A DNA stretch of 64,000 bases, from sequence record LR745208.1. One strand, given 5' to 3'. Shown piece after piece: positions 5,155 to 35,493 of this stretch (within the stretch, counting starts at the first letter, position 1; every line of letters begins with the position of its first letter). The notes under the pieces are model-generated. The model had not been told where the DNA came from. It searched no databases and saw nothing but the letters and a program-made list of their open reading frames with translations. A program made the translations under genes and the position numbers.

Positions 5155-8100
5155 TTAGTTCCCAGTCGTGAGCAGGAGGTTCTTGGTGCGGTAGATTGAG
5201 GCAGCCGTTCGAATGGCTGGTAGATCCGTGAAGGCAATGTTGTTGTTCGCATCGAGGTCTGCGAACCTTGAGATCACCACCAACAGCAACTCCCCCTTCC
5301 GGAACAGAAGGTTTGAGGTGGTACTCCTCACAAGCATTGTCGTGAACACTTTGTGACGGACTGCACCTGACAGGGGTTGGGCCATCGCGGTGGGCTTGTA
5401 CCCCAGATAGTTGGCGTAATCATAGTAGGCCCGGAACTCGCCATCAGTCAGAGGGCCACGTCCAAGTGGAGCGGTGTTGCCAAGGGTGATCGTATTGGAC
5501 CCGTCCATCTGCACCAACGAATGGAGCGTCAGAAGACCTGTCTGAGCATTGAAGTCCGTGATGGCCACATCAGCGGTTGCCGAGAAGTACCACTCTTTGG
5601 GAAAGCCCGCCCCAATGTCTACAGTTGGGACCTGCTCCATGGGACTACCATATGGGAAAGAATCATCTGTGGATCCCTTGCCCACTTGCCCCGTCCACAC
5701 ATTGTCCAATACGGCTACCGGCTCCAAAGTGATTTCGGTTGGAAGTACCACAGGCCCGCCCAACTGAATCCCACAGGTCTGTGGGGCCACGGCTGTGTAG
5801 TACACGTCAAGCTGATACCCGAGGCCCGCACCCGCATTGGGAATTGGATCTTGGGGCACATAGGTCACCGCAATTAGTACTTGACCCGCTACCGCGGCGG
5901 CCAAGGTAAGCTCCCTGGAGGCACTTCCAATAGCCGGAGTGACGGGCGGTGCCCCATTTGCCAACAGACCTGTTGCTGTCTGAATACGACGAGGGGTATA
6001 CACCTTTGTGGTGTTTCGGGTAACAATAGAGTCAAGGAAGATCGTAGACTTCTGCTCCAACAGGACTTCCCGCTTGTCAGATCGAAACTTGGGGTTTGGC
6101 ACCCAAGTAACATCCATCTCTGGGGGACGTTGTGTGGAATCCTGCTCCACCACAGACCCCCCATCATACGGCAGATACCCGGACGACGCACTGGGAGTGA
6201 GCGTGGTGTCAGGAGTATGCAGAAGACCTGCTCCTGTTGGATAAGTGACCTCCAACTCGATAAACAACCTCCGAGTTGATCCCCCATCTAGGGCAGGGTC
6301 GTCAACCATAGGATGGTCCACCCCTATGCCGCCATCATTGATAACTGATGGATTCGAGTCCAAGGTCAAAGAGATGATGTCCGTGCCCACTCCTGTCACC
6401 AAGGCCAGCTGGGTGGCCTGATCAACCATTACCGTATCATGGCCATCATCGTGAAACACTGTCAGAACATCTGTAACACGGGTCCCCACAGGCCATGCGG
6501 CACTTACCTTGGGGGCACCACCTACTGGAATGGTCCAATCCTGGAGGGAAGATGCCTCAAGAAGGCTGAAATCAATGTCAATGACATCCCCCTCACACCA
6601 AGAGAGAACGCTGGCCCCAGCCTTAGTGACCGTGATTCCAGTTGGGTGCGCCCCGGTTGGAAGAACCTCAAACACGATCTGCTCAACCACGGATTGGGAA
6701 GCAAACCTTCTGGCCACATGGTCAAATTCCCGGATGAAGTCTCCAGCAAACCCGGGGGCCCCAGCCCGTCCCACTTCGTTGCAGTACATGGGGGTCGTAG
6801 ATTGACCTCCAGAGCCGTTACCTATTAGGCCCACGTCGGAGGCATCCACTTGCCACGTCAAATTGGTCTGATCCATCAGGGATTGTGACTGGAATTTGAG
6901 TTCTGAGGCAAAGTCATACCCGGGTGGGGTCACGTGTCTACGGAGGTCCAGGACATCCACTGCATCAATCAGGTCGTGGAATAGCCCATCTGGACGGTCA
7001 GACTTCCCAGCGGCAATCGCTACTGGTCCTGCCACGTCAATGTGGGTATTGGCAAATCCCACGTGAGTGAAATTAATCCCCCCATTAGCATTAGCCGCTG
7101 GGCTGAAGCCCCCTGTTGCCGTGGCGTCGTTTCGGCGGAACACAAAACACACCGGAATGGCATACACAAACCCATCCACGGAACCCAATGCCGTCGAAGC
7201 AGCGGAAGACCCATCCCCGGCGAGGTATAGGCCCGCATCCTCAAACCCATAGGCCGTAGCATCGGAGTTTGCCACTACTGTGGCGGCATCTGCCGGAACG
7301 AAGGGGTATGTGGCGACAGGGGCTCCTTGTGCCCCCTGGGCCAAGATATTCACATTGCTGAAGGCATCTGGCTGAGACTTTGGATTTACCCCGAGAGCCA
7401 AGTCAGAGTACACCCTGAGACGATATTGGATTTGAACCCTCTGTGTGGTCTCAACATTCAACACCGGGTCCACAAGGTCGTCAGTAAGATTGACACCAGA
7501 CGGGCTGCCAACATTTCCATGCCGGTAAATCGCGTTCTGATTGGGTTTGTTGGTCCTATCTGCACCATTCAATAGAGTAGCAGCGGAGACCACAATATTG
7601 ATTCCGCCAGTGCTCTCTGCGAGCAAAATCCCATTCCCCGCAACCCCCCCAAAGGTGGCCGTCACAATGACGGTGTTGGAGAGCAGAGACCGGGCAGCCA
7701 CGTAGGTTGGATAGAGGCCATTTGCGGGGTTGTTGATTGCCGCCACAAGATTGGTGGCCGTAGCATTCGCACTAGCACCAATAGCAAATCCTGTGGCACC
7801 GCCACCATCGGCCACAAACGTAACCGCTGGGCCTGCTACAGCAGTGGCATCAATGGTAGTGGTATCCCCAGGAGCAATCACCTGAGGGTCGACAATCTCA
7901 ATGGTACCTCGGGCTCGGGGGGAGGGGGCTACTTGGGCACGCCAAACCTCCAGGAACACAAAATCGGTGGTCTTAATGTCGGGGGCGATTCCAGAAGATG
8001 CCTGGGCCGCCGGGAGCGTGATGACATTGGCCCCCGGCGTGGTAGTTCCCGTGTATTCCACTGCCACGGGCATCCCAGCAACTATGGCGAGGAGCTTCCC

Positions 8101-8444: not shown

Positions 8445-9791
8445 CTAGAGCATCGAGGCAGCGAGGTCTGCCAAGGGGCTACGGACCCCCTCAGGCAAAA
8501 ATACGGCTCCAGCGATGTGGGAGGTTCTGGTCACTGTGGCAGCATGAACCAATCCGTTGCTAAGGGCATCCAGGAAGGGGTCATCAATCTGAGATGGGTC
8601 CCCACACAACACCACCTTTGTACCCGTAGCCGCCCTCGAAACGATAGTCCGGACTTCATGGGGCGATGTGTTCTGAACCTCGTCGAAGATCATGAATGCT
8701 TTGGGGATAGACCTGCCCCTAATTGAGTGCATGGGCTGGATCTCTACCTGCCCAGCATGGAGCAACTGCTCCCAGTTTTTCTCTTGGATCCCCTTCTTCT
8801 GGTTTTCCTTTTTGTCTGTGGTCAAGAGCTGGTCCAAGTTGTCGTAGAAGGACATCATCCAAGGGGCCATCTTTTCCTCCTCATTGCCTGGGAGGTAGCC
8901 AAGGTCTCGGCCCATTGGCACCACGGGCTTGGAGAGGATGATTTTGTCGTATGCCTTGTCTAACTGGTGTAGGGCCACCATAAGTGAAAGGAGGGTTTTC
9001 CCGCTGCCACTAGGTCCCATCAGCACGACCAATTGAACCTTGGGGTCCAAAAGAAGGTCCAAAGCCATTTGCTGCCCCTCGTTCTTAGCATCAAACTTCA
9101 TCTTGGGGACCCTGGTGGAGATTGGCTTGAGGGACGCCTTCCCCATTCGGAAGAGCTGGGATTCCCCATCAGGTGCCGTGAATTGTACAAATTCATTAGG
9201 GGCTACACCCGTCAGATCTACAACATCCTCTGTCCAAGGGGGCATCTCCGCCTTAGTGCCATAGAGGGTCTGGAGGTTGTCCAGGCTCGCGATGGGTAGG
9301 GTATGCTTCCCAGTTGGGATCTCTCCCGGATGCACTCGGTCTTCTCGGTAATCCTCAGTCTTGAGGCCCCTGGCATCCGCTAGGATCCTCAGGTTCACGT
9401 CCTTGGTGACCAGGACCACAGTCAGGTGCTTGAACCGTTCTTGCGCCTTCAGAGCGGAGCCAAGAATGAGCATGTCCATCTTCCGGGACAGGGATGTATT
9501 CTGAAGCTCCTCGAAGTGCTCGTCCTGACCTATGATGAAAAAGTGGCTGTTGGTTCTGGAGTCCAGAACCCCCCCTGGATCCTGAAGGCTCCCCTGCTCA
9601 ACAATCTCTGCAATGTGTCGGCTAGCAGTTCGAGCGGCTGAAGCCACATCGTGACGCTGGCTAATCTTCAAGTCATCCAACTCCATGACAACGAAAAGTG
9701 GAATTGCCACCGAGGACTTCCTGTAACTGTAGAGAGACTCGGGATCATGGACTAGGACAGAAGTGTCGAGCACAAACAGTTGATTTTCCAC
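8445..9791 (-). CDS. phoH: PIN-PhoH (PhoH2-like) protein: N-terminal PIN domain plus PhoH ATPase
   Basis: N-terminal FVLDTSVLVHDP (PIN), LVTKDVNLRI, Walker A GPSGSGKT, LGYLPG, RGRSI, Walker B IFDEVQN, GDPSQID. Confidence 0.92.
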   Translation of the reverse strand: MENQLFVLDTSVLVHDPESLYSYRKSSVAIPLFVVMELDDLKISQRHDVASAARTASRHIAEIVEQGSLQDPGGVLDSRTNSHFFIIGQDEHFEELQNTSLSRKMDMLILGSALKAQERFKHLTVVLVTKDVNLRILADARGLKTEDYREDRVHPGEIPTGKHTLPIASLDNLQTLYGTKAEMPPWTEDVVDLTGVAPNEFVQFTAPDGESQLFRMGKASLKPISTRVPKMKFDAKNEGQQMALDLLLDPKVQLVVLMGPSGSGKTLLSLMVALHQLDKAYDKIILSKPVVPMGRDLGYLPGNEEEKMAPWMMSFYDNLDQLLTTDKKENQKKGIQEKNWEQLLHAGQVEIQPMHSIRGRSIPKAFMIFDEVQNTSPHEVRTIVSRAATGTKVVLCGDPSQIDDPFLDALSNGLVHAATVTRTSHIAGAVFLPEGVRSPLADLAASML

Positions 9792-13500: not shown

Positions 13501-15832
13501 AGAGCCTCCGATTGTTATGGAACCCGAAACCAACCCCCGTGAATACCCCATCCAACGTGTACTGGGTGACCTGCAACCTTGCCCCAATGGAAACTGAGGT
13601 AGAGATCGGGAGAGGGAAATCCTGCTTCCAGTAGGACACAGAGGAGGGGTCATTGTCCGTAAGGGTGAAGATGCCGTTGGGGGCGGATCCCTGAGGATTG
13701 CCAACTGAAACCCATGGGCTACTTGGGTCATTCATCCCCCCATCAAAACTGAAACTTTGGGGCCCTACATCGGCCACCGCATAGGGGACATTCACCCTGC
13801 CCGGAGATTGGTTCAGCAGCAACGTTGTGGGGCTGTTCAGGGCAGCCGTATAGCCCTTCTCGAAGGCTAGGTAACGATGGGCAACCTGTAGGGCGGGATT
13901 CCTTCTTGGATACCGCCCCAGTGCAACAGCCATCGGGAAACGGGTAGTATCCGCACCCCCTCCAGGAAGACCAACACCCGAAGACGTGGTGTGGCGTCCG
14001 CCTTTCAGGTCCCACTTGTTGAGGGTCAATCCCATCGTGTTAAGCCGAAGTCCCTGAACCGGGGCTGGGAACCAGCTGTAGCTCACGGTTACGGTATGTG
14101 CCCCAGGAGCAAATCCAGCAATTGGGGCAGCTAGGGTGATCAGACCCGTGAAGGGGTTGATTGCACTAACGGTTACGGGGGCCGCATCATAGAGCACGGT
14201 CACATCGTATTTGGAGGCAGGAGTGCCATCCCCCCACCCCTTCACCAACGGTCCCCTGGCCACCTGGAGTGTACTGAAGGGGCCTCCCGGGGAGTAGAAC
14301 TGGGACTCCGCATCCTCATTGGTAACCACAATTGGTCGACGGATACCAAGGCGGTCTACCTCCACCGTATAAGCCACACCACCCCCGGCACTTGTAAACC
14401 TTGGGGCCACCCGAAGAATGGAGGGTGCGGGACGAACGGATGTTGAGGGACCTAGAGCATCCCCAACTGGACCCCCATCCAAGCCCAGCACCGTTTCTAG
14501 GAGGTACGAACCAGCATTGGGTCCTGTAGCAAACGTCAGAACCTCTCCCGGCACAGCCAGTGAGAAATCCTGTAGGGCATCGACAAAAGCCCCCTCCTCC
14601 ACAGTGGCGTTCCCTGACAACCCAGTGGGAGACGTTGTGTAAGCCCTGGCCACCACATCATCCCCATAGGGAAATGTGAGAACCGCTTTTACCTCATATC
14701 GATGCTCCCGAGGAAGATGGGTGCTAGGAGCTGGGGCGGGCACCACAGGTACCAGAAGGGTGGCCCCAACTCGAACTGACCGGAAACTCAATGTGGGGTC
14801 ATTGAACATGTACCGGTCAGCCAGCACAATCCCACCAGATCCCGAAAGCTCCTTCGTACCTGTACAGTCCCTACGGACGTCCTCATACCGATAATCACTG
14901 AGGTCCACCCTCCCCAATGTATCAGTGAAGGCTTGGTCAAGGGTCTCCCGGAACAGGTTACGGTACTCATACAAGGTATGGGCGGGGTCTAGTGCCTGTA
15001 GGATTAGAGCCACATTACTTTGCAGGACCAGTGGTAGGTCCGCAAAATCAGACAAAAGATCATGAACGTGTGGATCCTGTCCCACCCCATTAGCCGACTC
15101 CACCAGGAACCCGGATATTGGATGGGTGTGAGAGGGGCCAGTACCCGCATCATACACGGCATCAACCGTGGTACCTGTACCAGATACGTTGACGGTCACC
15201 GTGTGATAATGCAAGGCCACCGCAATAGCTGAGGTGGACGCGGTTTTCCGATACTTCGATATGTCTACCTCGAAAGTGAACTGGTCTGCAAGGGTCCAGG
15301 CTACTCCTGGGACCCCTACAAACTTCCCCTTCTCAATGATGGAAACATTGGCATCGGTCAAGGCTTCCACACCAGAAACAAGGGTGGATACTTTGCTGCC
15401 TTGTAGGAGCAGGGCAACCATCCTCTTGAGGAACTCCCGGTAGGTAATATCCCCGCCTATCTCAGGGATTCCAGTGACGCTTGCATCTGGAAATACCAGG
15501 GTTGCGAGGAACTGGAATAGGACCTCGCTGCGGGTGAAATCAAAGTCCGTGTCCTCGTATGCATCTGTCAGTAGAACCTGGATCTTGGCCAACTCCTCAG
15601 CCGCCGATTGGAATTGTTGGACATAGTAAGGGCCCTTTGATTGGGCCACATAGTTCGAGGGCAGCGAGTTGAGAAACACCGTAACGATTTGGTCCGCAAG
15701 CGCACGTACACGGTCAGCATCAACCTGCCCAGTTACCCCAAATGGGGCTGGGTTCTGTGCACTCGGGCCATAGACGGAGGCAGGGAGGCGGCTGGTTAGC
15801 CCTGAGGTGTTTGGGGATTTGGGTAGGGTCAT
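10541..15832 (-). CDS. Very large baseplate/tail protein, 1763 aa
   Basis: Long ORF directly downstream of the baseplate J-like gene; HxH motifs near the N-terminus; beta-rich composition. Confidence 0.65.
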   Translation of the reverse strand: MTLPKSPNTSGLTSRLPASVYGPSAQNPAPFGVTGQVDADRVRALADQIVTVFLNSLPSNYVAQSKGPYYVQQFQSAAEELAKIQVLLTDAYEDTDFDFTRSEVLFQFLATLVFPDASVTGIPEIGGDITYREFLKRMVALLLQGSKVSTLVSGVEALTDANVSIIEKGKFVGVPGVAWTLADQFTFEVDISKYRKTASTSAIAVALHYHTVTVNVSGTGTTVDAVYDAGTGPSHTHPISGFLVESANGVGQDPHVHDLLSDFADLPLVLQSNVALILQALDPAHTLYEYRNLFRETLDQAFTDTLGRVDLSDYRYEDVRRDCTGTKELSGSGGIVLADRYMFNDPTLSFRSVRVGATLLVPVVPAPAPSTHLPREHRYEVKAVLTFPYGDDVVARAYTTSPTGLSGNATVEEGAFVDALQDFSLAVPGEVLTFATGPNAGSYLLETVLGLDGGPVGDALGPSTSVRPAPSILRVAPRFTSAGGGVAYTVEVDRLGIRRPIVVTNEDAESQFYSPGGPFSTLQVARGPLVKGWGDGTPASKYDVTVLYDAAPVTVSAINPFTGLITLAAPIAGFAPGAHTVTVSYSWFPAPVQGLRLNTMGLTLNKWDLKGGRHTTSSGVGLPGGGADTTRFPMAVALGRYPRRNPALQVAHRYLAFEKGYTAALNSPTTLLLNQSPGRVNVPYAVADVGPQSFSFDGGMNDPSSPWVSVGNPQGSAPNGIFTLTDNDPSSVSYWKQDFPLPISTSVSIGARLQVTQYTLDGVFTGVGFGFHNNRRLFFAGALVVTNPVTGTSLRHIGLLARPGELSSQNSWVIGPQAEGTILARTGVPPVAQVVTIPTGSVPTLLAAGDKFQILTGTQTGVYTVVDIFQSTTGVTAIGVTPVFPADPELFGNRDVTIYFETKWDEGPCTWRLYANTRSQTAQVVFGGTSGASLSIGAVTLASPAYLGPDVLPEGYGRAVWGSLDRVATNATEWQFIRYQATPDGAYAFSRGTVIDTTMTQDPEDAEWYLTTPFGDSALDAGALRITSTPAIEGLGTSYGYGYTDPFLTGRRVSALDAKVSVARDTYGIGGATLTLQDTHRQAELSSILYQDNGGFGKSIYRSDTLSLVGSVPYYLQTWDAVVGTGITEPSTFPNGPEYLLTSVADTWSMFNTLTPYYAFGVGRFLEFRMAITSFVGGAAGRIGLSLLAQGVGVQVCLDFVATDTIVLRGDPTTAAIATVAVPWSDGAQRTYRLEFETGAITLYVDNVVAVILAPGAFPGPSTLLGDVEIRAYPAVTSQFEASLRGLCFGITEFGVLNLHRSFGLYLGGDKHDINNWKIPRTDGLTVANSDPLSVITEMDWRSECWVRVFMDPTFGASFVRPDLAPPPGYTGDFATQSMDPSAGWVTLDYMQLPRVTSDEKFGSVVFGALNPASSVLSTWDDVRYRVFTNISVDYRAPQSMVLNRWNVISSGDRLKDMSPEEVVVASTTDARISLRPCHIYADRVFAVRVDNVTLPTNLWRFNRDSQEVSLLGITLPSSNYPVNVVFAAGRPVTTTYLQSQPLRESQTLLNEGTPPVPMSQTGIAVLDTDTVSTVSGDGGLTPAFPPAVPADPNYFLRDQYLVRKYENDPDYLYERMSFFQLDDGGDRSRISSFCDGSKMSGVGFSGTTFSENFVGVGQVDRGRGPGTSRFVLFASGGVAGGADGELGLIGPAIYTAPFSGDPNPAATGVGPAMLYPTAPATGTVPGVDTGAIYREVTWILRYGAAPGAILTDSDPPALVAAL

Positions 15833-15835
15833 GGC

Positions 15836-18800
15836 CTAGCGATCTTCCGTGTATGTGAATCGGACACTGCCCAAAACCAGATATTCCATCTGATTCACTG
15901 CGATATCCTGTTCCCCCTCACTGTACCGCACCATGTACGTGGTCCAGTACTTGTGGTTGGATGGGGCATCCCCAATTGGCAATGAAACCAGCACATGATT
16001 TTTGACTAGATCCTGGCTGTACCCCGGAACCAGGAGCCCCCCACTTCCTATGATGTATGCCCTCCCATTACCCTGAGCTAGATTCTGTGGGGCACTCGTT
16101 TGAAGGTCCAACGCCACGTCATCCTGGTACACCCCACGGAACTCATTTGTTGGTCCCCCCCCGTTGTCAGTAGGGGCTGTGAGCTGTTGAATGATGAGCC
16201 ATGTAGCATACTGTGAATTAGACCAGGAATCAACCCTGAAGGCGTCCCCCAGAGCCAAGGTATCCAGGTCATCCCGGACCACCTGACTATTGACCGCACG
16301 GGCCATCTTGGTCAAAGGAACCACTACATAGGATACATAGTCGCTCCGGTCGATAGCCGTGATGACATCCGACCTGCGAAGAGCTTGGACCGACCCGGAC
16401 ACAAGGTACTGAAGGTTGTTACGGATGGACTGGTCAGCGAGGTTCCGGATGTCTCCCTGTTGGGTGCCAGTGCCCTTCTTCAATACCACAGATGCCGTGA
16501 TGTCAACGGGCACCTGTACGGATTCCTTGGCCAACACCAGGGCCGTTGCATGACTCCCATCATCCAAAGCTTGCTGCAAAGCGGATGTCACCAAGTTGGT
16601 CTGATAAGAGACCACGAAATTCTCGGCGTACTGGTAGGTAATCAGTACAGTCCCCCCGTCAGGGATGGTGCTGGTTTGGGTCCGTCGAATCCCCACAGGG
16701 TTCGTGGCGTCCCCCTCAACGATTGTGTAATCGGGAGTGCCCCCTGGGTCGTAAGGCCCCGCATAGGTGACCGTGCTGGTGCTGTTTGTGACCACTAGGC
16801 TCAGGGAGTCTGCCCCCAGACGGAACAGGGACTCCACGTAGAAGCCACTCACCAAATGAAGCTCGTTAGTTTCGGTGAAGAGTGCCCCAGATGGAGACAC
16901 CACATTGGGATCCGTGGACTCGTTGATCTGAAGGTAGTCTCCTGCTTGGGTGGACTTCCCCAGGCCCAATGGTGCCTTAGGGTGTACAAGAGAGTAGAGT
17001 TGGGTATCCAGCAACCCCGTAACCTCCCCCTCCACAGAGAGAACAGCACTCACTGGCTGGCGAGAGAGCGTGTAGGTAGTCCCGGTCCGGTAGCGGTAGT
17101 CCCCCAACACAATGTCTGTGAGCCCCAATGCGGGCTGAACAATCCCTGAGGCGGTGGACAGTTGGATGGTGTTGTAGTTGAGAATTACCACCCCGGTCAG
17201 GTCAAAAAACTCCCCTGTAGTGATGTTTCGGATACCCAACCCGAGAGAGAGGTAGTCAAGCATCTGTGCCAGTGGGTTGGAAACCGTCAGATCCACATCG
17301 ATAGCCCTGAGGACGTAGTCACTAGGGGTTCCAATGACCACAAACTGAATGTCCCTCTTCTGGGAATAGGTGAAGGCAAACACATCCGAGATGGTCGCAT
17401 TGCGGACACCACGTTCCCACACATCCACCAACCCCCCCATATGCCTCTTGAGGGTCGTGTCATAATCCCGCTGCATAAAAGGGCTACCTGCCCTCACCAC
17501 CTGTGATTGCAGCACTCCAGGAACACTTGCTGCTATCTTCCCATACCCCTGAGCAGTCCCAGTGTCCACAGAGGCCAAGGCAGCCCTTGCCCTCGATGCC
17601 AAATGAGAATTGGTTTCTACGTCGGTCCCTCCGAAGGTAGGAGCATCATTCGTCACGGACAACCCATACACGGCACTCGATGTGATCTGCCGTGCCCCAA
17701 GGTTCGTCACAGACCCTACGGTCACTGCCTGAAGGGGAACCGTGACCGAGTATTGCCGGGTGGCGGGATTGTAGAAGGAAGCCAAGCTACTCACGGGAAT
17801 GGAAGAGGATCGAGTAGTCCTGTACTGAATACCACCACCCACCACGATTGTCCCGAGAGGGATTGGGAGGCTCTGCGTCGGGGTCAAAGAGGTGTAGAAG
17901 CGGCCCTCACCAATGGCCCCCTTACCACCTTCCCTGGTAACCCCAAAATTGGCAGCAAGCTTCTCAAAAGACCCATCGATGATGGCCTGCACATCATTGA
18001 CATTTGAGAAGAACAGGGCCGAGGCCAGAGCTGTCTTGTAGGCCGAGGAGGCAGGGGACACGGATGCCCCCGTGCCATTGGGGTCGTCAATTGCCAACAG
18101 GGTGTCAAAAGAGGATGCCCGGTACACGTAGTCCAGCAGGAATCGGACCCGCTCAACCTCTGTGGAGAATGGGTCCAGGAATGTGTCCCGTACCACTGCC
18201 CCAGGTTGCACTGCAATGTCTGGGTTCTGGCGGTAGATTGAGAAGATCGCTTCCTCCAGGGTCTGTTGCCTGGAGATGGCAGCCAGCGTGGTCGTCTGGA
18301 TCCTAATGACCGCAGGTGCCCCCACTACCTCCGTAGAGAAGAAGGATTCAAACTCCGTCTGTGTCGTGGTATCGAAGTAAACTGCGGTTACCACATAGAA
18401 GAGGGATTCCGTAGAGGGGGTTGAGGCAAACACCCCCGAGAAAATGGTGGGGGGGGTAGACTGTGCATTGTTGTTTCGCCCATGGGCGAAGGAGTAGTAG
18501 GTCACCGTCTCCAAAGAGGACAGGGTCACCTGGGTCTGGATCTCCGTAACCGTCTGTGCAATCTCTACCCTGGAGTCCACGTCCGCCGACAACACCGTCT
18601 CCGCAAGGTTCTCTTGGTCAACCCGGGCTCTAACATACAGGGGGTTGGATGCCTGTGCAGGATTCTTGGAGGTGAGGGTAAAAAGCTCCGTGGCATTCTC
18701 CACAGGCTCCCCCGTAACGACCTTGTTGACATTGAGGCGGGTGTACCCACTTGCTCCTCCCCCCGCAGTCGTGGAGGCATAGAAGTTGTAGCCAGTAACT

Positions 18801-19213
18801 CGTGTGTCGGTGAGCCCCTGGACGGTGATTGTTACCTCATTGTCCATTCGCTCAATTGTGATACCACTGGGTGGCTCGAATATCTCTACCTGGGATGGGG
18901 AGATGAGCCTGATAGTAGCGGTGACCGCAGGGGTTCTGGTACCCCCCAGGTAAACCCCACGCACCTGAATGATGTTATCCCCAGACAAAAGGTCCAGCCC
19001 ATTTGGGAAGGATGATGGGTTGGGGATCGTGAAGCTAGTACCGGTAAAGGCCACAAGTGAGGGGTCACTCGTGAAGGGCTGCCCAAAGATGGACACCTCA
19101 ACGTCAATGATATCGGTGGATAGAGTCCCACTTAGGAAGCTGGTAGTCTGTGCAGTCGAAAAGACCAGTTGGTCCCTGAGTACACCGTCGGGCCCGAGAA
19201 GTTGTAGTGTCAT
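15836..19213 (-). CDS. Baseplate wedge protein (baseplate J/gp6-like), 1125 aa
   Basis: PGAVVRD-type motif, FEKLAANFGVTR, IPLGTIV, GGTDVETNSHL-x-x-RAR pattern of baseplate J-like proteins; follows the gp25-like gene. Confidence 0.75.
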   Translation of the reverse strand: MTLQLLGPDGVLRDQLVFSTAQTTSFLSGTLSTDIIDVEVSIFGQPFTSDPSLVAFTGTSFTIPNPSSFPNGLDLLSGDNIIQVRGVYLGGTRTPAVTATIRLISPSQVEIFEPPSGITIERMDNEVTITVQGLTDTRVTGYNFYASTTAGGGASGYTRLNVNKVVTGEPVENATELFTLTSKNPAQASNPLYVRARVDQENLAETVLSADVDSRVEIAQTVTEIQTQVTLSSLETVTYYSFAHGRNNNAQSTPPTIFSGVFASTPSTESLFYVVTAVYFDTTTQTEFESFFSTEVVGAPAVIRIQTTTLAAISRQQTLEEAIFSIYRQNPDIAVQPGAVVRDTFLDPFSTEVERVRFLLDYVYRASSFDTLLAIDDPNGTGASVSPASSAYKTALASALFFSNVNDVQAIIDGSFEKLAANFGVTREGGKGAIGEGRFYTSLTPTQSLPIPLGTIVVGGGIQYRTTRSSSIPVSSLASFYNPATRQYSVTVPLQAVTVGSVTNLGARQITSSAVYGLSVTNDAPTFGGTDVETNSHLASRARAALASVDTGTAQGYGKIAASVPGVLQSQVVRAGSPFMQRDYDTTLKRHMGGLVDVWERGVRNATISDVFAFTYSQKRDIQFVVIGTPSDYVLRAIDVDLTVSNPLAQMLDYLSLGLGIRNITTGEFFDLTGVVILNYNTIQLSTASGIVQPALGLTDIVLGDYRYRTGTTYTLSRQPVSAVLSVEGEVTGLLDTQLYSLVHPKAPLGLGKSTQAGDYLQINESTDPNVVSPSGALFTETNELHLVSGFYVESLFRLGADSLSLVVTNSTSTVTYAGPYDPGGTPDYTIVEGDATNPVGIRRTQTSTIPDGGTVLITYQYAENFVVSYQTNLVTSALQQALDDGSHATALVLAKESVQVPVDITASVVLKKGTGTQQGDIRNLADQSIRNNLQYLVSGSVQALRRSDVITAIDRSDYVSYVVVPLTKMARAVNSQVVRDDLDTLALGDAFRVDSWSNSQYATWLIIQQLTAPTDNGGGPTNEFRGVYQDDVALDLQTSAPQNLAQGNGRAYIIGSGGLLVPGYSQDLVKNHVLVSLPIGDAPSNHKYWTTYMVRYSEGEQDIAVNQMEYLVLGSVRFTYTEDR

Positions 19214-19217
19214 AGCC

Positions 19218-20336
19218 TTAGAAGTTCCCTAGAGACAGATTGTTGGTCCCAGGCAATGCGAACATACCCGGTGCAGTGTAAACGATTGAAATGACCACCG
19301 GGTCACTGGAGAAGTTGCGGACATTGACCTCCACCAGGAACACCGTTGGGTCTTCTGAGGACGGGGTCACAACCACCCCGTCCACTGAGAAGAGCCTCTC
19401 CTTGGCCGTAATCCGCTGGAATTTGGCCTGAGCATTCTGGAGGTTCTGGAACCTAGTCAGAGCGTTCATGACCGACTGCCGAATCCCCGAAGCCGTTCCC
19501 CCAATTGCTTTACTACCAATCAGGTCGGCCAGATTGGACCCATACCAGGGGTAGTAGATATTGGACCCGAGTTCCGTCAGGATGACCTTGAGACAAGACT
19601 GGTACAGGAGGTTCTCGTCAGTAACGGTAATGGCCTCCCCTTGGGTATCAAACCGGTAATCGTTTTCCACCTCAGTGCCACGGCACCGGAGACACTGGTC
19701 AGGCGGGACCGTGTAGGTCACCGAGTAGTAGTAGTTCTGTCTAACTGGAGCATCGAACCGAATGAAATACCCCCGGGGGTCCGCCTCTGCGATGTCCTGT
19801 GCGGACCCCAGGCCCGCCGAACGGGCATACACCTTCCATGAGGGGACCACCACCTTCCCCTTGTCCCCGCTTTGCTGGTCAAACCCCAGAGGCTCCAAGG
19901 CAGTCCCCGTCACCTGCATGCGGGAGGACAATCCCATGGTCTTCTGGTCCGTTAGCGTGAAACACCCGTTCCCCACGGAGGCCCCCACCTGAACGTCACT
20001 CCCCTGTGCGGCAGTGAACAGGCTAGTGAGACGCTCATTGGACAGGTACCCAGTAGGGAGGGACACCGTGAATGTCCTGGTGGTTGTGGTGACTGTGATG
20101 GAGTTGGTAGCTGTGGTCACCCGGTAAGGCTCTCGGCGGTAACTCCTCAGGGTCGCCGAGGTTACCACCCCCGTGAAGGCAGGTACCTCGTAGGTATCAT
20201 TCACCACCAACTTGAGAAGCGAAGTCCCATTGATGGGCTTGATCGTGTAAAGGGACCGGCGATCTGGGTCAAGAGTGACCCTTTCCTCACCTAGAATATG
20301 ACTACACGGAAAAGCAAGTTGGATATCTCGGCTCAC
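19218..20336 (-). CDS. Baseplate protein with C-terminal GPW/gp25-like domain
   Basis: C-terminal LLYQSCLKVILTELGSNIYYPWYGSNLADLIG...FLVEVNV, typical of the gp25 family. Confidence 0.75.
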   Translation of the reverse strand: MSRDIQLAFPCSHILGEERVTLDPDRRSLYTIKPINGTSLLKLVVNDTYEVPAFTGVVTSATLRSYRREPYRVTTATNSITVTTTTRTFTVSLPTGYLSNERLTSLFTAAQGSDVQVGASVGNGCFTLTDQKTMGLSSRMQVTGTALEPLGFDQQSGDKGKVVVPSWKVYARSAGLGSAQDIAEADPRGYFIRFDAPVRQNYYYSVTYTVPPDQCLRCRGTEVENDYRFDTQGEAITVTDENLLYQSCLKVILTELGSNIYYPWYGSNLADLIGSKAIGGTASGIRQSVMNALTRFQNLQNAQAKFQRITAKERLFSVDGVVVTPSSEDPTVFLVEVNVRNFSSDPVVISIVYTAPGMFALPGTNNLSLGNF

Positions 20337-20515
20337 AGAGGCACCCTCTTCAGGTCTATAGACTCGCCGGGAACGTAGCTGACCACGTAAGCAGGGTCAC
20401 AGGGCCACACACCCGCTAGGCCGCAAGCGGCCCTGCGAATGTCCCGCTTGGTTGCCCCTTCAGGCACATCCACCGTCCCTCGGGGGCTGCCCTCTACCTG
20501 AACCTCAATTTGCAC
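20333..20515 (-). CDS. 60-aa protein resembling the leucyl-tRNA synthetase C-terminal (tRNA-binding) domain
   Basis: Perfect SD TAAGGAGGT 8 nt before GTG; stop overlaps the next start (GTGA); VQVxGxxRxxxxVPxxAT...VxYVPG matches the LeuRS CTD pattern. Confidence 0.65.
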   Translation of the reverse strand: MQIEVQVEGSPRGTVDVPEGATKRDIRRAACGLAGVWPCDPAYVVSYVPGESIDLKRVPL

Positions 20516-20635
20516 CTGGGGAGACCTCCTTACAGTCTACCAACGGGGCGACGATACAAGGGATAGGGCCGGAGGAATGGCTAAGGCAGCCATATTCGTG
20601 GGCCGGAGTAGGTCCAACCACTCGAAAGATATGGA

Positions 20636-21526
20636 CTAACCGAGGGCACACCAATCCTCTTCTCCATTCGGAGCATCGTCCAAAAGGACCGGGAAGCTGG
20701 GGTTGGGGCCCGTGACCCTTGGACGAGACATGTCGAAATCCCCATTGGATAGGCGGGGGTAGAACACCTCGTCAATCATCGAAACTATTGTTGCGACATT
20801 ATGGCTCAAAGCGTGCTGGTCAGGCACCCAAATCAGCCCCGGAACCGACCCCCCCACCGCTTGGGGTAGAGTCTCTTCCATTTCTTGCTTGAGCTGTTCC
20901 CTAAGGTCCATAAGTTTGAGAATTCTCGCTTCTCCGTCATTTCTCAGGGTTTTTATTTCCTTGGACACCCAAACCCTGGTGGCGTTGATGGTCCTAGACA
21001 TCTCCGCTGCCTCTGCGGCATAGCTGGTTGTGTTCCCAAATCGCCTTGGCGGGTACCGGAGCAAATTAAGCCATCCTCCAGTATAAGTCCCACCTGCCGA
21101 AGGGTCTGCCGTCTGTGAGGAAGCAATGCCCCCATAGGGCTGTGTCTCGACTACCTGTGTGGGGGAGGTTTCCCCATTCTCAGGGTCCCCCGGTGGGGCA
21201 TCAGGGGCATCGACGATTTGGACTGAGTCGGGCTGCAAAAATAGAGAAATGTCGAACAAGTTCCCACCCATAGCCACATATGCCTGACACAGTTTCTCCA
21301 AACTGGTATTCGGCGACACATCGATACCAATTCGACGTTCACTCATTGGTGAGGTTGGATTGTTGGGGTCACGTCGGGCGTACAAAACCCTTACCAGACC
21401 GATCCTATGTAACTCTGCGGAAATAGTGGTGATCCGAGCCAGGACATCGCGTCTTTGGTTCAAAATAAATGCCCGAAAATCCCGGTAGGCACCCTGACGA
21501 AAATAGCCACCTACTGAAAAGCTCAT
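20636..21526 (-). CDS. Hypothetical protein, 296 aa (possibly virion-associated)
   Basis: Clean ORF co-oriented with the structural operon; ATGA overlap with the GIY-YIG gene. Confidence 0.6.
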   Translation of the reverse strand: MSFSVGGYFRQGAYRDFRAFILNQRRDVLARITTISAELHRIGLVRVLYARRDPNNPTSPMSERRIGIDVSPNTSLEKLCQAYVAMGGNLFDISLFLQPDSVQIVDAPDAPPGDPENGETSPTQVVETQPYGGIASSQTADPSAGGTYTGGWLNLLRYPPRRFGNTTSYAAEAAEMSRTINATRVWVSKEIKTLRNDGEARILKLMDLREQLKQEMEETLPQAVGGSVPGLIWVPDQHALSHNVATIVSMIDEVFYPRLSNGDFDMSRPRVTGPNPSFPVLLDDAPNGEEDWCALG

Positions 21527-22461
21527 TGGCCCCCCTCCTCTTTCTGGGTCCTTAGAGCCGCCCGTGCCTCCCTAGCCTTCCTTCGACCTTCCTTCATTTT
21601 TGCCCTGGCTTCCGGACCACGCTTCTTACCCAAGTGGGATTGCCGAACCTTTTCAATGTGCTCAGGGGTATGCACGCTACCTGAATGGGTCTGTCGAAGT
21701 ATTTCTATATGCTCCGGGGTCAGTTTTTTTCCTTGCTGCGCTGTACTAGCGGCTTCTCGCATTTCAGGAGTCCAAACTCTTTCTCGATTCGAGCGTCTTG
21801 TTCCCTCTAGTTCCTGAGGGGTCTTTTGACGATTATGGTGGGCAATAGCGGCTGCGGCATGTGCCTGAGGGGAGGGGTTGACCCCCTTCTTAGCAGCACT
21901 CATCTTCGCCCGTGTCTCAAGGGATCTCACAGACCCTAGATTCGCAGTGCTAATCTTTGCTTTCTCCTCCTCCGTCATTGCCCGTCCCGTACCTATAACT
22001 CCAGCCTTCAGGATGTTTGCAATGTGCTCGGGGGTAAGTCTTTTTCCAGTGTGAGAGGCACTCATTTTTGCCTTACTTTCTGGAGCATGCTTACCTCTGG
22101 ACCCGCCTTCAGTCAGATTATAGCCCCGAGGTGCTCGACACTCCAGGGTCTTAATTAGGTTGATTTCCAAATCATTCAAAGCGTCCTGGTTTTGCGCCTG
22201 AGCCACAGTCTCAATTGCAAAATTCCCCACGCCATACTTCCGAATTGCTTTGCTCAACAGGTGCCCACGTCCTGCCAGAGCCTCACTCTGATGGTCGTAC
22301 CACCTGTTTGCTACCCCCATGGTTGTCTGCCCAACATAGATTTTCCCATTCACTATACAAGTCACCTTGTAGATCTCCCCATAAGGTTTTGCATTCCCGG
22401 CAGCATCCTCCCTAAGCCCCAGAAGCCCCTCAACGCCCCCTTCCTCCTTGGCCCCACTCAT
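21523..22461 (-). CDS. Free-standing GIY-YIG homing endonuclease with NUMOD3-type repeats
   Basis: GEIYKVTCIVNGKIYVGQT; repeated H-x-PE-x-x-x-K-MS-x-x-x-x-G units in the C-terminal half. Confidence 0.9.
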   Translation of the reverse strand: MSGAKEEGGVEGLLGLREDAAGNAKPYGEIYKVTCIVNGKIYVGQTTMGVANRWYDHQSEALAGRGHLLSKAIRKYGVGNFAIETVAQAQNQDALNDLEINLIKTLECRAPRGYNLTEGGSRGKHAPESKAKMSASHTGKRLTPEHIANILKAGVIGTGRAMTEEEKAKISTANLGSVRSLETRAKMSAAKKGVNPSPQAHAAAAIAHHNRQKTPQELEGTRRSNRERVWTPEMREAASTAQQGKKLTPEHIEILRQTHSGSVHTPEHIEKVRQSHLGKKRGPEARAKMKEGRRKAREARAALRTQKEEGGQ

Positions 22462-22649
22462 CGCCCGGCCCCCACTGAAGGGGCTGTGATAGGCGTCACA
22501 GCGATTAAGGCATCCGCCTCCATACGATCTACAATCAGGTTACGGATAACCTGAGCGACAGAGCAATGGCGTCGAACTGCCTCTTGCTCTATCCATTCTT
22601 GAAGTGCGGGACCCAAATAGGTCCTGGTGGCGTGTTTCTCAGTGGTCAA
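22458..22649 (-). CDS. Ribbon-helix-helix (CopG-like) small DNA-binding protein
   Basis: TRTYLGPALQEWIEQEAVRRHCSVAQVIRNLI fits the RHH pattern; start refined to TTG 22649 by SD GAGGAG (track start 22724). Confidence 0.6.
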   Translation of the reverse strand: MTTEKHATRTYLGPALQEWIEQEAVRRHCSVAQVIRNLIVDRMEADALIAVTPITAPSVGAGR

Positions 22650-22744
22650 AAGTCGGTCTCCTCTATACCTAAGGGAGCCATATAGTGAGACCACCGAGGA
22701 AATTCGTTTGCTCCCGCCTCCCAAATAGGCGTAAGGTACCCATC

Positions 22745-23335
22745 ATGGCCGACGACCCACCCCAACCCCCCAACCCCACTTTCACACATGTGGTCAGTGA
22801 CCTACATCTCGCACATGTGAGGATCATCATCTATGAGCCCATGCGTCAGGCTTGGGGGGTGGACTCGGATGCCATGACCGAGACTATGATCCAGGCTTGG
22901 TCTAATATAGTGAAGCCAGAGGATCATGTCTTGAACCTTGGAGACTTCATGCTTGGCCCAAAGGTCAAGTGGCCCGAATATCGGCTACGCTTGAACGGGC
23001 AGGTCACGATTGTGAAGGGCAACCATGACCCCATCAAACAGGAACATTGGGACCTGATGGCCCCCCTCAACATCCACGAGACCCTCACCTTCATGGATCC
23101 TGTTCTCGGGGTGGTGGTCTGTAGGCATGACCCCCACAAGTTCACCCCGGAGGACATCGCCAAGGCGGACCTGTTACTCCATGGGCATCTCCACTCGAAC
23201 CAGCACCACCTGCCAGCCAGAGAAGAGATCCGGGCCAAGTGTGTCTGTGTGAGCATCGAGCAACTCCCCACAGCACCTGCCCCGATGCCCTGGGGGCAGT
23301 TCCAGGAGTGGGCAAGACAGAAGCTTGGACGATGA
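22745..23335 (+). CDS. Calcineurin-like metallophosphoesterase
   Basis: VSDLH, NLGDF, KGNHD, HGHLH motifs; ATG 22745 after TAAGG (track start 22685). Confidence 0.88.
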   Translation: MADDPPQPPNPTFTHVVSDLHLAHVRIIIYEPMRQAWGVDSDAMTETMIQAWSNIVKPEDHVLNLGDFMLGPKVKWPEYRLRLNGQVTIVKGNHDPIKQEHWDLMAPLNIHETLTFMDPVLGVVVCRHDPHKFTPEDIAKADLLLHGHLHSNQHHLPAREEIRAKCVCVSIEQLPTAPAPMPWGQFQEWARQKLGR

Positions 23336-23768: not shown

Positions 23769-24551
23769 GTGGTTATGAGGAAATCCAAAGTAGTAGTGGG
23801 GACAATTTGGGGTAAGTGGACAGTTATCGAGGAGCTACCACGAGTTGACACACCATCAGGCCGTCAGAGGCCCAAAGTAAAAGTCCGTTGTGCATGTGGT
23901 AAGGAATCCGAGCTTCAAAGTACTGGCCTCACTAGTGGGACCAGCACGGGATGTAGAAATTGTGCGAAAAGAGCCGCGACCGTTGGCGACAGGTTCGACA
24001 AACTAGTGGTCCAGGGATATGAAAAGGTTAGAGGAAAATCCATGATTGCTTGCCTATGTGATTGTGGGAACCGAGTTATGATTCGCATAGGACAATTACG
24101 GACCAACCAAACCAATCACTGTGGTTGTGCACATATTGGGTCATGGGCAGGTGTCGGGGAGCTGTCCAAAACCGTGTTTAACCACATTCGCCACAATGCC
24201 AAAGTCAGAAATCTAGAGTTTAGGATCACCTGTGAGGAAGCATGGGCTCTGTATGAAACCCAGGGACGGATATGTGCCCTAAGTGGTCTTCCGCTAGCTT
24301 TTGACTTCGGATCTGGTAGAAACACTGCATCCCTAGATAGAAAAAACCCCTCCAAAGGATACACCCTGGACAACGTCCAATGGGTACATAGGGAGGTAAA
24401 CCTAACAAAATGGGACTTCACGGATGATGAATATATCACGATGTGTCGCCTCGTAACGGATCACCAAGCAGGACTCGTGGCTCAAAAGCGTAACAGCTCC
24501 CATGAGCTCCAAGAAGTCCCCGCAACCCACATCCCTCCCCTGGCTACGTGA
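23769..24551 (+). CDS. His-Me finger (HNH-like) endonuclease with repeated CxCG DNA-binding modules
   Basis: RCACG, CLCDCG, HCGC; CALSGLP...ASLDRKNPSKGYTLDNVQWVHREVN. Confidence 0.8.
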   Translation: MVMRKSKVVVGTIWGKWTVIEELPRVDTPSGRQRPKVKVRCACGKESELQSTGLTSGTSTGCRNCAKRAATVGDRFDKLVVQGYEKVRGKSMIACLCDCGNRVMIRIGQLRTNQTNHCGCAHIGSWAGVGELSKTVFNHIRHNAKVRNLEFRITCEEAWALYETQGRICALSGLPLAFDFGSGRNTASLDRKNPSKGYTLDNVQWVHREVNLTKWDFTDDEYITMCRLVTDHQAGLVAQKRNSSHELQEVPATHIPPLAT

Positions 24552-30837: not shown

Positions 30838-31248
30838 CTACATAACAGTGACGTAACAGGCCCTAGGAGCTTCCTTACTCCCTACAGGGGCAGGCACAGC
30901 ATAGAAATCCACGGTGGCCCCTCTCATCGGAATGCTCTTGGAAACCACCTCAGATTTGTGCAGGTAGAAGGTCTTACCCCCCTTGGTACGGATGAACCCA
31001 TATCCCTTAACGGGATCGTAATTGGTCACCAGCCCTGTGAACTTAGCGGGAACTGTCAGACGGGTCACCGAGAGGGCCTTATTAGAGTCCGGCTCCTTCT
31101 CGAAAGACACTGGCTCCCCTGTAATGGGAGGAGCCCCCTCTTGGCTATCGAAAGCCGAGAAGTGGAAGAAGACATCCTCCCCCCCATCCCCGGGGACCAC
31201 AAACCCGTAATTCTTCTCGGCCAGATATCGTCTAATGGACCCTATCAC
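30838..31248 (-). CDS. Tandem cold-shock domain protein (two CSDs)
   Basis: KNYGFV...EDVFFHFSAF and KGYGFI...TFYLHKSEV (RNP1/RNP2 twice); GTG 31248 with SD GGAGG at 5 nt (track start 31260). Confidence 0.9.
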   Translation of the reverse strand: MIGSIRRYLAEKNYGFVVPGDGGEDVFFHFSAFDSQEGAPPITGEPVSFEKEPDSNKALSVTRLTVPAKFTGLVTNYDPVKGYGFIRTKGGKTFYLHKSEVVSKSIPMRGATVDFYAVPAPVGSKEAPRACYVTVM

Positions 31249-32423
31249 CATACCCTCCAAACATTATAGCTCCGAAACACCAGATCTTCCGGTTTGGCAT
31301 TCCGATAAACCCGGACCCCTGTTTTTAGTGTCTGTAGGGTGATTAGACCTTTGTTACTAACCCCTCCAACGTAAGTCAGGCCATATTTGGGATGGGACAC
31401 CAAAGAACCCCGCTTAAACCCAGAACTCCTCGTCCCCCCATAAGGTTTCCTGATTCCCCCGACGGCAGGAACCATCACATGCAACTGCCTACGATGGAAC
31501 CTAATAGGAGAGATACACAACATATTGGTGTTCTCAGGGAGGGTATGCCCACCAACTAGCCAATTGGCTAGGACCCAGCTATCCACACAATGAGCTGCAA
31601 ATACCTCAGACAACTTGGCTTTGCTCTTCTTCAATCCAACGGCATCTCGAAGAGCCTTGGTTTCCCATCCCTGCTTGAGATGCACCTTCCCAAATTGCTC
31701 AAGTTCCTTGTAGAACCACGTCTTTCCAATCTCCAAAGGGGAGAAACTCTTGTTCCACTTCCGGACCCCTTTGACGGTTCGTGCCTTGATGTCCTCCACA
31801 ACCAGATCAGTAATGGGGAACATCTTGGCCAATTGAGCCACAATTCTTATCTTCCACTGCCATCTAGCTTTGGTGCTTGGAGCTAAGCTCCCACGTTGCT
31901 TCCGATTCATCCTGGATGCTCGATAGGGGGTCTTCCTGGATCGCCGGGTTCTCCTCATCATCCGTCGGGTTTCCACTGCATCCTTGACATGCTGGACGGC
32001 ATCGGCTTGAATATTGAGGAAGGTGTGGGCCTTTGACTTAACTGTGAACCCTTCCTTCTTGGACCCAGGATCAATCCCTACTGCTATTGGTTGTTTCTCC
32101 TGGGCGGAGGGCTCCCGATTGAGGCGGACACAGAAGATCCCCCGCTTGAAGAACGGGGTGGCTTCCTTGTTCTTGATCCAACGTCGAGCCCTACTTGGGG
32201 TTGTTGGCATCAAGGGTTTTTGATTGCTATCTACGACTGGAACTACCTGATAAGGCCCTCTTTCGAGGGTGTGTACACCACTTCGACGCTGATCTACCGA
32301 GGGAAGCAAGGCTAGTGGGGCACCCTGCATGTCGCTCGCCCTGCCACGGGCAGTAGATTCAGCCGATGGCACGGCGCCATCCTGTCTAGTCAACCGTTTT
32401 CTCCTGTTGGTCTGCGTTAGCAT
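31245..32423 (-). CDS. isrB: IsrB (IS200/IS605 OMEGA RNA-guided nickase; PLMP + split RuvC + bridge helix, no HNH)
   Basis: KPLMPT, RuvC-I VGIDPG, bridge helix RRMMRRTRRSR, RuvC-II VVEDIK, RuvC-III HCVDSW; no room for an HNH domain; conserved core starts near codon 60 (32246); true start uncertain. Confidence 0.88.
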   Translation of the reverse strand: MLTQTNRRKRLTRQDGAVPSAESTARGRASDMQGAPLALLPSVDQRRSGVHTLERGPYQVVPVVDSNQKPLMPTTPSRARRWIKNKEATPFFKRGIFCVRLNREPSAQEKQPIAVGIDPGSKKEGFTVKSKAHTFLNIQADAVQHVKDAVETRRMMRRTRRSRKTPYRASRMNRKQRGSLAPSTKARWQWKIRIVAQLAKMFPITDLVVEDIKARTVKGVRKWNKSFSPLEIGKTWFYKELEQFGKVHLKQGWETKALRDAVGLKKSKAKLSEVFAAHCVDSWVLANWLVGGHTLPENTNMLCISPIRFHRRQLHVMVPAVGGIRKPYGGTRSSGFKRGSLVSHPKYGLTYVGGVSNKGLITLQTLKTGVRVYRNAKPEDLVFRSYNVWRVW

Positions 32424-33663: not shown

Positions 33664-33948
33664 ATGAGTGATCTTGAGAAGAATCCAGCACTAGAGCAGG
33701 AGCAAGAGGAGGATGTAGTCCTTGAGGAAGGGGACTTTGCTGTCGTCTTCAAAAGTGACGGAGACATCAAGATTATGGTGACAGAGGGGGAAACTGAAGA
33801 GAAGGATCAAGACCAACTAGAGAAGGCCGTGGGTCTGGCCGAATACATCCGGTTCGTCCTGGACAGTGAAGAGTGCCTGGAACTGTTCAAGCAGCACAAT
33901 AAGGAATATGAGGCTGCTCCCGGGTCAGGCAGCAACGTCCTCAATTAG
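33664..33948 (+). CDS. Small acidic hypothetical protein, 94 aa
   Basis: MSDLEKNPALEQEQEEDVVLEEGDFAVVF; start refined from track 33520. Confidence 0.6.
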   Translation: MSDLEKNPALEQEQEEDVVLEEGDFAVVFKSDGDIKIMVTEGETEEKDQDQLEKAVGLAEYIRFVLDSEECLELFKQHNKEYEAAPGSGSNVLN

Positions 33949-35492: not shown

Positions 35493-35493
35493 G

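Follow-up and report, generated by a model that had tools for sequence, protein, structure and literature searches.

A small gene in the baseplate operon of a 485-kb uncultured phage resembles the C-terminal domain of leucyl-tRNA synthetase

We analysed a 64,000-nucleotide stretch of DNA (the window) from LR745208.1, an unannotated record of 485,034 bp deposited as "uncultured phage". Our subject was a small open reading frame (ORF) that an earlier note, made from the letters of the window alone, had described as a free-standing phage relative of the C-terminal domain (CTD) that bacterial leucyl-tRNA synthetase (LeuRS) carries. The window contains no N and matches the record at 100% identity, window positions 15500–23000 corresponding to record positions 263500–271000; the same genome is also present in IMG/VR as a contig of 485,040 bp. 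The ORF was found where the note had placed it, but on the minus strand, at 20333..20515, with a GTG start at 20513–20515 and a TGA stop at 20333–20335, and it encodes a protein of 60 residues, MQIEVQVEGSPRGTVDVPEGATKRDIRRAACGLAGVWPCDPAYVVSYVPGESIDLKRVPL. A Shine-Dalgarno (SD) sequence, TAAGGAGGT (20524..20532, minus strand), stands 8 nt before the GTG and is identical in the one other variant of the gene that we found, which lies with the same neighbours on a 5.8-kb groundwater contig (L001) and encodes a product (P0002) that is 75% identical. The stop codon and the GTG with which the next gene begins overlap in the sequence GTGA (20333–20336). The perfect SD, the GTGA overlap and the separate existence of the gene in a phage of 485 kb, as an ORF with an SD of its own, were thus all confirmed.

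Downstream of the ORF, on the same strand, lie genes for the baseplate. The next gene (19218..20336, minus strand) encodes a 372-residue protein that is, in its C-terminal part, a gp25-like sheath initiator or baseplate wedge protein (PF10934, E 6e-6; phrog_43 and phrog_975), and a gene in the same operon (15836..19213, minus strand) encodes a Baseplate_J (gp6-like) wedge protein of 1125 residues (PF04865, 2.3e-18; phrog_6, 2.2e-24). The ORF is the first cistron before these wedge genes and, at the level of the sequence, no terminator lies between it and the gp25-like gene; the GTGA overlap indicates that the two are translationally coupled. An in-frame TAG stands eight codons upstream of the GTG in the window copy, and in L001 a TAG immediately precedes the same GTG, which fixes the start. 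Long ORFs of LR745208.1 end in TGA, TAG and TAA (154, 123 and 69 cases, respectively), which means that the phage uses the standard code even though one of its tRNAs has the anticodon TTA. This tRNA, which would read UAA and possibly UAG, and a tRNA with the four-base anticodon TTTA were seen at record positions 7629–7705 and 142332–142406. At 62.3%, the GC content of the ORF exceeds the window's 99th percentile, and its GC content at third codon positions (GC3, 66%) is typical of the operon.

The CTD of LeuRS (E. coli residues ~800–860, PDB 4AQ7 and 4ARC; Thermus thermophilus, 2BYT) is, like the ORF product, a unit of about 60 residues with the order strand-strand-helix-strand-strand. We built a profile of 63 positions from 84 bacterial LeuRS CTDs. 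These comprised the CTD of E. coli K-12, one encoded on an IMG/VR contig, seven from leuS genes of bacterial DNA present under "phage" records and 75 from species of many phyla. The window ORF matched this profile with 21.2 bits (E 1.5e-8 as a single comparison, Z=1), and none of 200,000 shuffled versions of it rose above 12.2 bits. In the six-frame translation of the window (1,237 segments) it was the sole match (E 7.8e-6), the segment after it scoring 4 bits, and no match was found among the 8,518 six-frame segments of the remaining phage genome, where the best score was 6.3 bits. Profile–profile comparison with hhalign gave a probability of 94.5–94.8% (P 5–8e-8), and the LeuRS-like protein similarity exists in the frame of the ORF only. 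As a side observation, six records labelled as phage (OQ572405.1, OR847287.1, OR846593.1, MG543995.1, MT835489.1 and CAKLQF020000020.1) carry full-length leuS of bacterial type with bacterial neighbours such as lptE; such records probably include host DNA and served here only as a source of LeuRS sequences.

The single-sequence AlphaFold2 (AF2) model of the ORF product (predicted local distance difference test score, pLDDT, 81) has a predicted beta-grasp fold with strands at residues 2–7 and 13–16, a helix at 23–34 and strands at 43–48 and 52–57. When the model was compared with the PDB by Foldseek, as the earlier note had suggested, the top ranks were taken by LeuRS enzymes, namely those of N. 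gonorrhoeae, E. coli and Agrobacterium, at E 5e-3 (30–34% identity over 56–60 columns, TMq 0.58–0.70), with ubiquitins next at 13–18% identity. The boundaries of the ORF are those of the CTD, from the first strand to the end of the enzyme, and the order of the secondary structure elements coincides. Over strands 1–2 and the helix, which the profile match spans, the two have in common V, Q, G, R and V and the pattern A-[ST]-K...A; YVPG, also shared, precedes the last strand. Significant similarity is restricted to ORF residues 2–33; the C-terminal half matches LeuRS at YVPG only (2.0 bits, p ~0.03, in register). No match to the ORF was found in Pfam (at E<=1 and E<=10), PHROGs or NCBIfam, and since no Pfam family matches even at E<=10, the LeuRS match is specific and not that of a generic beta-grasp protein. 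LeuRS C-terminal fragments in a big protein set likewise have no Pfam domain over the CTD part. Ubiquitin-like, ThiS/MoaD and TGS proteins were not supported as relatives, there being no Pfam match at E<=10 and the ORF ending in ...KRVPL and not in GG. Simpler searches were less sensitive: BLASTP against E. coli LeuRS returned nothing for the window copy and E 0.057, at the right position, for P0002, and phmmer against PDB sequences found no LeuRS but only noise (DotG and a protease inhibitor). The likeness to the LeuRS CTD that the note had proposed holds, and the letters of E. coli LeuRS that it quoted, ending in RKVIYVPGKLLNLVVG, are correct. Taken together, the sequence comparisons make it likely that the ORF is truly related to the LeuRS CTD; once all ORFs and all families that a reader might have proposed are allowed for, the significance is good but not overwhelming.

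The most conserved part of the LeuRS CTD is the hairpin Q-V-N-G-K-x-R, where Q, G and K never vary (84/84 sequences) and N and R have frequencies of 94% and 96%, respectively; in the C-terminal block K-x-I-x-V-P-G-K-L-V-N-I-V of the same 84 CTDs, K is kept in 99%, N in 98% and V in 100%. According to Hu et al. (PMC3561953), the sheet of the CTD is a neutral platform for the tRNA elbow, the Q (Q822 in T. thermophilus, Q915 in Mycobacterium tuberculosis, Q805 in E. coli) hydrogen-bonds G19 at the elbow, the R (E. coli R811, M. tuberculosis R921) contacts the variable arm, and Asp substitutions at V914, Q915, R921, L949 and L964 of the M. tuberculosis enzyme abolish aminoacylation. The window copy retains V5, Q6 and R12, which correspond to M. 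tuberculosis V914, Q915 and R921, three of these five Asp-sensitive residues. The LeuRS invariants are divided in a complementary way between the two copies of the ORF, the window copy having Q, G and R and P0002 having G and K, which fits descent from a LeuRS-like QVNGKxR ancestor.

All estimates of evolutionary rates come from one pair, the window copy and P0002/L001. Codons 31–60 (20336..20425, minus strand) encode the loop C31-GLAGVWP-C39-DPAY, followed by YVPGESIDLKRVPL, and differ by four synonymous changes and one non-synonymous change, with 1/30 residues altered. Their ratio of non-synonymous (dN) to synonymous (dS) substitution rates, omega, was 0.08, and that of the flanking genes was 0.06–0.10. 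The neutral expectation is ~73% non-synonymous changes (binomial p ~0.02), and the pattern indicates that this half of the gene is under purifying selection. Codons 2–30 (20426..20512, minus strand), which cover strands 1–2 and the first half of the helix, evolve fast. The inward and outward sides of strands 1–2 were assigned from strand periodicity, and on this assignment the inward positions I3, V5, V15 and V17 are unchanged between the copies. Because of the strong conserved SD, the start overlap, the pLDDT of the model, the selection on codons 31–60 and the frame-specific protein similarity, the ORF looks like a real gene that is translated.

Upstream of the ORF lie a non-coding spacer of 120 nt (20516..20635, minus strand), a gene for a 296-residue protein without assigned function (20636..21526, minus strand) and a gene for a GIY-YIG/NUMOD3 homing endonuclease (21523..22461, minus strand), one of several mobile endonuclease genes around the baseplate module. 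Orthologues of the gp25-like gene were found at 20 IMG/VR loci, three of them copies of the same genome and 17 in relatives at 49–62% identity, and within ±4 kb of the gp25-like gene no similar ORF was found in the 17 relatives. In eight of these (L099, L102–L104 and L106–L109) the orthologue of the 296-residue protein, which ends in ...LLDDAPxGEEDWxxxG, is followed by the gp25-like gene after 28–52 nt with nothing between. The absence from the relatives means that the spacer (120 nt) and the ORF (183 nt) form an inserted block of about 300 nt that only the window phage and L001 have, with the 296-residue gene at its upstream edge. Three relatives hold a NUMOD3/GIY-YIG-type endonuclease gene at the junction (L094, 3310–3957; L095, 3087–3734; L098, 3337–3954). 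From these comparisons we conclude that the junction upstream of the gp25-like gene (20336–20636) is a recurrent insertion hotspot in the baseplate module and that the ORF is an accessory gene and not a core structural one.

The spacer, which arrived with the ORF, is identical to that of L001 at 118/120 positions with one 1-nt indel, and this near-identity is part of a larger low-divergence block of ~330 nt. It has no Rfam match, its fold z-score is -0.27, and in the spacer and the ORF no sigma-70 promoter or terminator consensus was found. For these reasons, and because the conservation belongs to the larger block, we rejected the spacer as a non-coding RNA or regulatory element. It is also unlike the LeuRS region preceding the CTD, so that capture of a longer piece of leuS was rejected. 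The spacer carries GCCCTATCCC at 20560–20569 (minus strand), which resembles a motif upstream of the gp25-like genes in relatives. In most of the relatives L094–L110 the motif (T)TCCC(C/T)NCTATC(A/G)C is conserved 25–35 nt upstream of the gp25-like start; the motif is not enriched elsewhere in the window and may be a late promoter or a regulatory site.

Other explanations of the arrangement were considered and rejected. The 296-residue gene, the spacer and the ORF share one frame that is split by two TAG codons (20333–21526, minus strand); a read-through fusion of the three was rejected because in L001 the frame is interrupted by the 1-nt indel and because each of the three stop codons ends long ORFs. 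Neither a remnant of a homing endonuclease nor a paralogue elsewhere was supported by any similarity. The LeuRS CTD helps the yeast bI4 intron, and a role as a splicing cofactor for a group I intron was considered on this basis and because of the neighbouring endonuclease genes, and was rejected, as no intron was found in the window. We also observed that two patches of the 296-residue gene (20867–20956 and 21227–21316, minus strand) are only 58–63% identical to L001 in 60-nt windows, the rest being 80–98% identical, a mosaic pattern like that of the N-terminal half of the ORF. The structural module as a whole shows heavy invasion by genes of mobile and auxiliary kinds: those encoding a PhoH-like ATPase, two endonucleases of the HNH type and a DNA methyltransferase lie between baseplate genes (8445–9791, minus strand; 23769–24551, plus strand; 31245–32423 and 33945–35546, minus strand), and a phosphoesterase gene is also near the module.

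Our searches yielded no further members of the family. Apart from the window genome's own copies, L001 was all that we found in a word-index search of proteins, one metagenome scan and two scans of viral sequences; L112 and L113 were rejected as members, their matches being chance matches of 14–17 residues. A phmmer search of 1.84e9 representatives found the ORF's own cluster and spurious repeat proteins only, the six extra matches being FG-GAP, Ig and other repeat proteins and a spurious repeat ORF. In a set of 5.8e9 proteins the CTD profile matched 7,690 small proteins, which were rejected as they appear to be C-terminal leuS fragments from contig edges or frameshifts; three small CTD-only proteins on long contigs were checked and 3/3 lie behind a frameshifted leuS. 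In BFVD nothing similar was found, only ubiquitins at 10–22% identity, and in the literature we found no natural stand-alone LeuRS CTD. The view of the earlier note that no phage system of this kind has been described thus stands for the phmmer representatives, BFVD and the literature.

Outside the window, LR745208.1 encodes 36 tRNAs, mostly at record positions 141–201 kb; within the window no tRNA was found. All five tRNA-Leu isoacceptors (CAG, GAG, TAG, CAA and TAA) form one tight cluster at record positions 200518–201008. They are canonical type-II tRNAs with GG D-loops, TTC T-loops and long variable arms, and unusual tRNA-Leu elbows that a dedicated binder might recognise were therefore rejected. 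No LeuRS was found in LR745208.1, and among the "uncultured phage" records matches to E. coli LeuRS occurred in LR756501/3 and LR745206 only. The LeuRS-like genes of two other huge-phage records, LR756501.1 (191967–193505) and LR745206.1 (404834–405886), were compared with E. coli LeuRS by tblastn, and the matches end at residues 766 and 673, respectively, before the CTD.

The reading that we tentatively favour, as one possibility among several, is that the ORF encodes a LeuRS CTD that was captured and works in trans as a small binder of tRNA or RNA. It is favoured because docking on the tRNA elbow is the only activity known for the LeuRS CTD, and the isolated domain offers a precedent: the 67-residue Cterm of human mitochondrial LeuRS binds tRNA-Leu(UUR) with a dissociation constant of 0.6 uM and tRNA-Ile with one of 2.5 uM, and alone it rescues tRNA defects, for which its authors propose a chaperone action (PMC3927953). 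A block of ~300 nt entered between the 296-residue gene and the gp25-like gene in one sub-lineage of a huge-phage family, and the ORF became the first cistron, coupled to the wedge genes. In the favoured scenario, the domain would have been captured from the 3' end of leuS or would share ancestry with it. The free domain may still be a small nucleic-acid-binding module working in trans, its beta-sheet face docking on the outer corner (G19:C56) of L-shaped tRNAs. It would act late in infection, the phage supplying 36 tRNAs, all five tRNA-Leu among them, and no LeuRS. Bound in this way it might stabilise or shield tRNAs, or might be a competitor of the CTD of the host LeuRS. After the capture, constraint on strands 1–2 would have been relaxed and the new conserved loop C31...C39 would have arisen. 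The role of the separate protein probably differs from that of the domain in the enzyme, and because strands 1–2 are relaxed and a new conserved loop is present, a changed ligand is a serious possibility.

Several findings weigh against a tRNA binder of this type, and it is because the platform face is variable and the gene lies in a structural operon that we rate this reading no higher. P0002 scores only 6.7 bits against the CTD profile (E 5e-4), and its AF2 model has a pLDDT of 52, too low for a fold search; as the confidence of AF2 seems to rest on the LeuRS-like letters, the evidence from the fold is not independent of that from the sequence. The conserved hairpin reads Q-V-E-G-S-P-R in the window copy and L-L-D-G-K-P-M in P0002, with G alone common to both, and the residues that are invariant in LeuRS (Q, N, K, R, K and N) are not kept across the pair. 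N and K are lost from the window copy; P0002 has L6 and M12 in place of the elbow Q and R, yet keeps the K. L is likewise present at the Q position of human mitochondrial LeuRS, and the effects of Q915A and R921A are mild. Of the C-terminal block the ORF keeps only Y-V-P-G, its K, N and terminal V being replaced, and where the LeuRS CTD has a second helix with a critical Leu (M. tuberculosis L949), the ORF has the Cys-Trp-Pro-Cys loop C31-GLAGVWP-C39-DPAY instead. The LeuRS CTD is basic, with a mean net charge of +2.5 (range -1 to +5, n=84), whereas the ORF is near neutral (-1 in the window copy and +1 in P0002).

The pattern of substitutions points in the same direction. In codons 2–30, 14/29 residues differ between the copies (dN 0.40, dS 0.47, omega 0.85), and dN reaches five times the value for the neighbouring genes. 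All seven outward alternate positions of strands 1–2 are changed (E4A, Q6L, E8D, S10K, R12M, T14D and D16V), so the face matching the tRNA platform, the most conserved one in LeuRS, is the fastest-evolving part of the ORF although the tRNA elbow is invariant. So the ancestral tRNA-contact surface is no longer conserved, and constraint has moved to parts absent from LeuRS. The ORF also belongs to a late structural operon and is 67 kb away from the tRNA-Leu cluster. Finally, the roles that the earlier note had envisaged, shielding of tRNAs from anticodon nucleases, a decoy for LeuRS or a bias of translation, face a stoichiometry problem because every tRNA has the elbow; to shield the tRNA pool, a protein that binds such a universal feature with roughly micromolar affinity would need very high abundance.

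As an independent gene homologous to an appended domain, the ORF would count, on its sequence, among the free-standing synthetase domains, and conceptually it resembles Trbp111, CsaA and Arc1p (relatives of the OB-fold C-terminus of MetRS), AlaX and YbaK/ProX. Trbp111 is, however, an OB-fold dimer gripping the 3' CA end of tRNA and not the elbow (PMC11286949). Trbp111, AlaX and YbaK have other folds and sites than the ORF, AlaX and YbaK being editing enzymes, and none is derived from LeuRS. The LeuRS CTD itself is tethered to the body of the synthetase, whereas the ORF is a separate gene in a phage without LeuRS. We know of no protein of the Trbp111, AlaX or YbaK type described from a phage baseplate operon. 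Another counterpart is the isolated mitochondrial LeuRS Cterm (67 residues, human and yeast), which as a lone domain binds cognate and non-cognate tRNA in trans and can be a tRNA chaperone, the mode that we propose for the ORF; it is, however, an engineered fragment with positive patches, whereas the phage ORF is a natural gene known from sequence alone (PMC3927953).

The alternative that survives best, although we consider it rather unlikely, makes the ORF product an accessory of baseplate or tail assembly, in which the beta-grasp would serve as a protein adaptor, a decoration or a chaperone for the gp25-like and wedge proteins, and LeuRS ancestry would be mere history. The place of the gene as first cistron of the wedge operon, with its GTGA overlap, fits such a role, as do the near-neutral charge and the purifying selection on the non-LeuRS half with its new conserved Cys/Trp/Pro loop; beta-grasp sheets often bind proteins, and ubiquitin is the next-best fold match. 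However, 17 related phages keep the flanking genes and build the same module without the ORF, which is unlike any known contractile-tail baseplate family (no PHROG or Pfam match), and the gene is too recent and too narrow in its distribution for a core part.

It is unlikely, in our judgement, that the ORF is a moron for host takeover or anti-defence, whose fast-evolving strand 1–2 face would bind a fast-evolving host protein, for instance as a mimic of the LeuRS CTD. The target might be a factor by which the tRNA/LeuRS system is sensed or attacked, and the diversity of the face would then record an arms race. Like phage morons, the ORF is confined to one sub-lineage and lies between genes that are adjacent in eight relatives, at a site occupied by homing endonuclease genes elsewhere among the relatives; its GC content is extreme for the window, and the elevated dN of codons 2–30 coexists with the keeping of the buried residues. 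But only two sequences are at hand, their omega in this region (0.85) is not >1, and relaxed constraint explains the data equally well. Moreover, the ORF differs from morons in having no detected promoter or terminator consensus, in the spacer or in itself, and in being coupled to a downstream structural gene, and its GC3 is typical of the operon.

Equally improbable is a chance or convergent beta-grasp resemblance, a decaying remnant without a function of its own, or both. The signal is carried by 30-odd residues, BLASTP and phmmer fail, Foldseek gives an E of merely 5e-3 with ubiquitin close behind, P0002 scores low and is poorly modelled, the N-terminal half evolves almost neutrally, and the ORF was picked by a reader out of the whole window. 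Set against this are a P of ~1.5e-8 with the sole match in ~9,750 six-frame segments of the genome, an hhalign probability of ~95%, the agreement of start and end with those of the domain, YVPG in register and the absence of any other matching family. A remnant is further opposed by the purifying selection on the C-terminal half, in which 1/5 changes is non-synonymous (p ~0.02), and by the strong conserved SD.

Most doubtful of all is the more specific proposal that an elbow-binding LeuRS domain was captured and that the free protein acts on tRNAs late in infection, the variability of the sheet face recording an arms race; such a protein might protect or chaperone phage or host tRNAs against tRNA-targeting defences, or might throttle host leucylation. 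On this proposal, a LeuRS CTD would for the first time be known from nature as a free-standing protein, and phages would have a factor of a new class directed at tRNAs.

The reach of these observations is limited, as the ORF is an orphan of two metagenomic phage lineages with no cultured host. Should it prove to be a baseplate accessory, a domain of the translation machinery would have been exapted into a virion module. The control of the host tRNA pool by phages is an active field that includes tRNA arrays, the repair of cleaved tRNAs and the evasion of anticodon nucleases, and the players known to us in it are all tRNAs or enzymes. A natural free binder of the tRNA body with its origin in a synthetase domain would bring a tool of a new kind to this repertoire, a counterpart in nature of the isolated mitochondrial LeuRS Cterm that has been studied as a tRNA chaperone.

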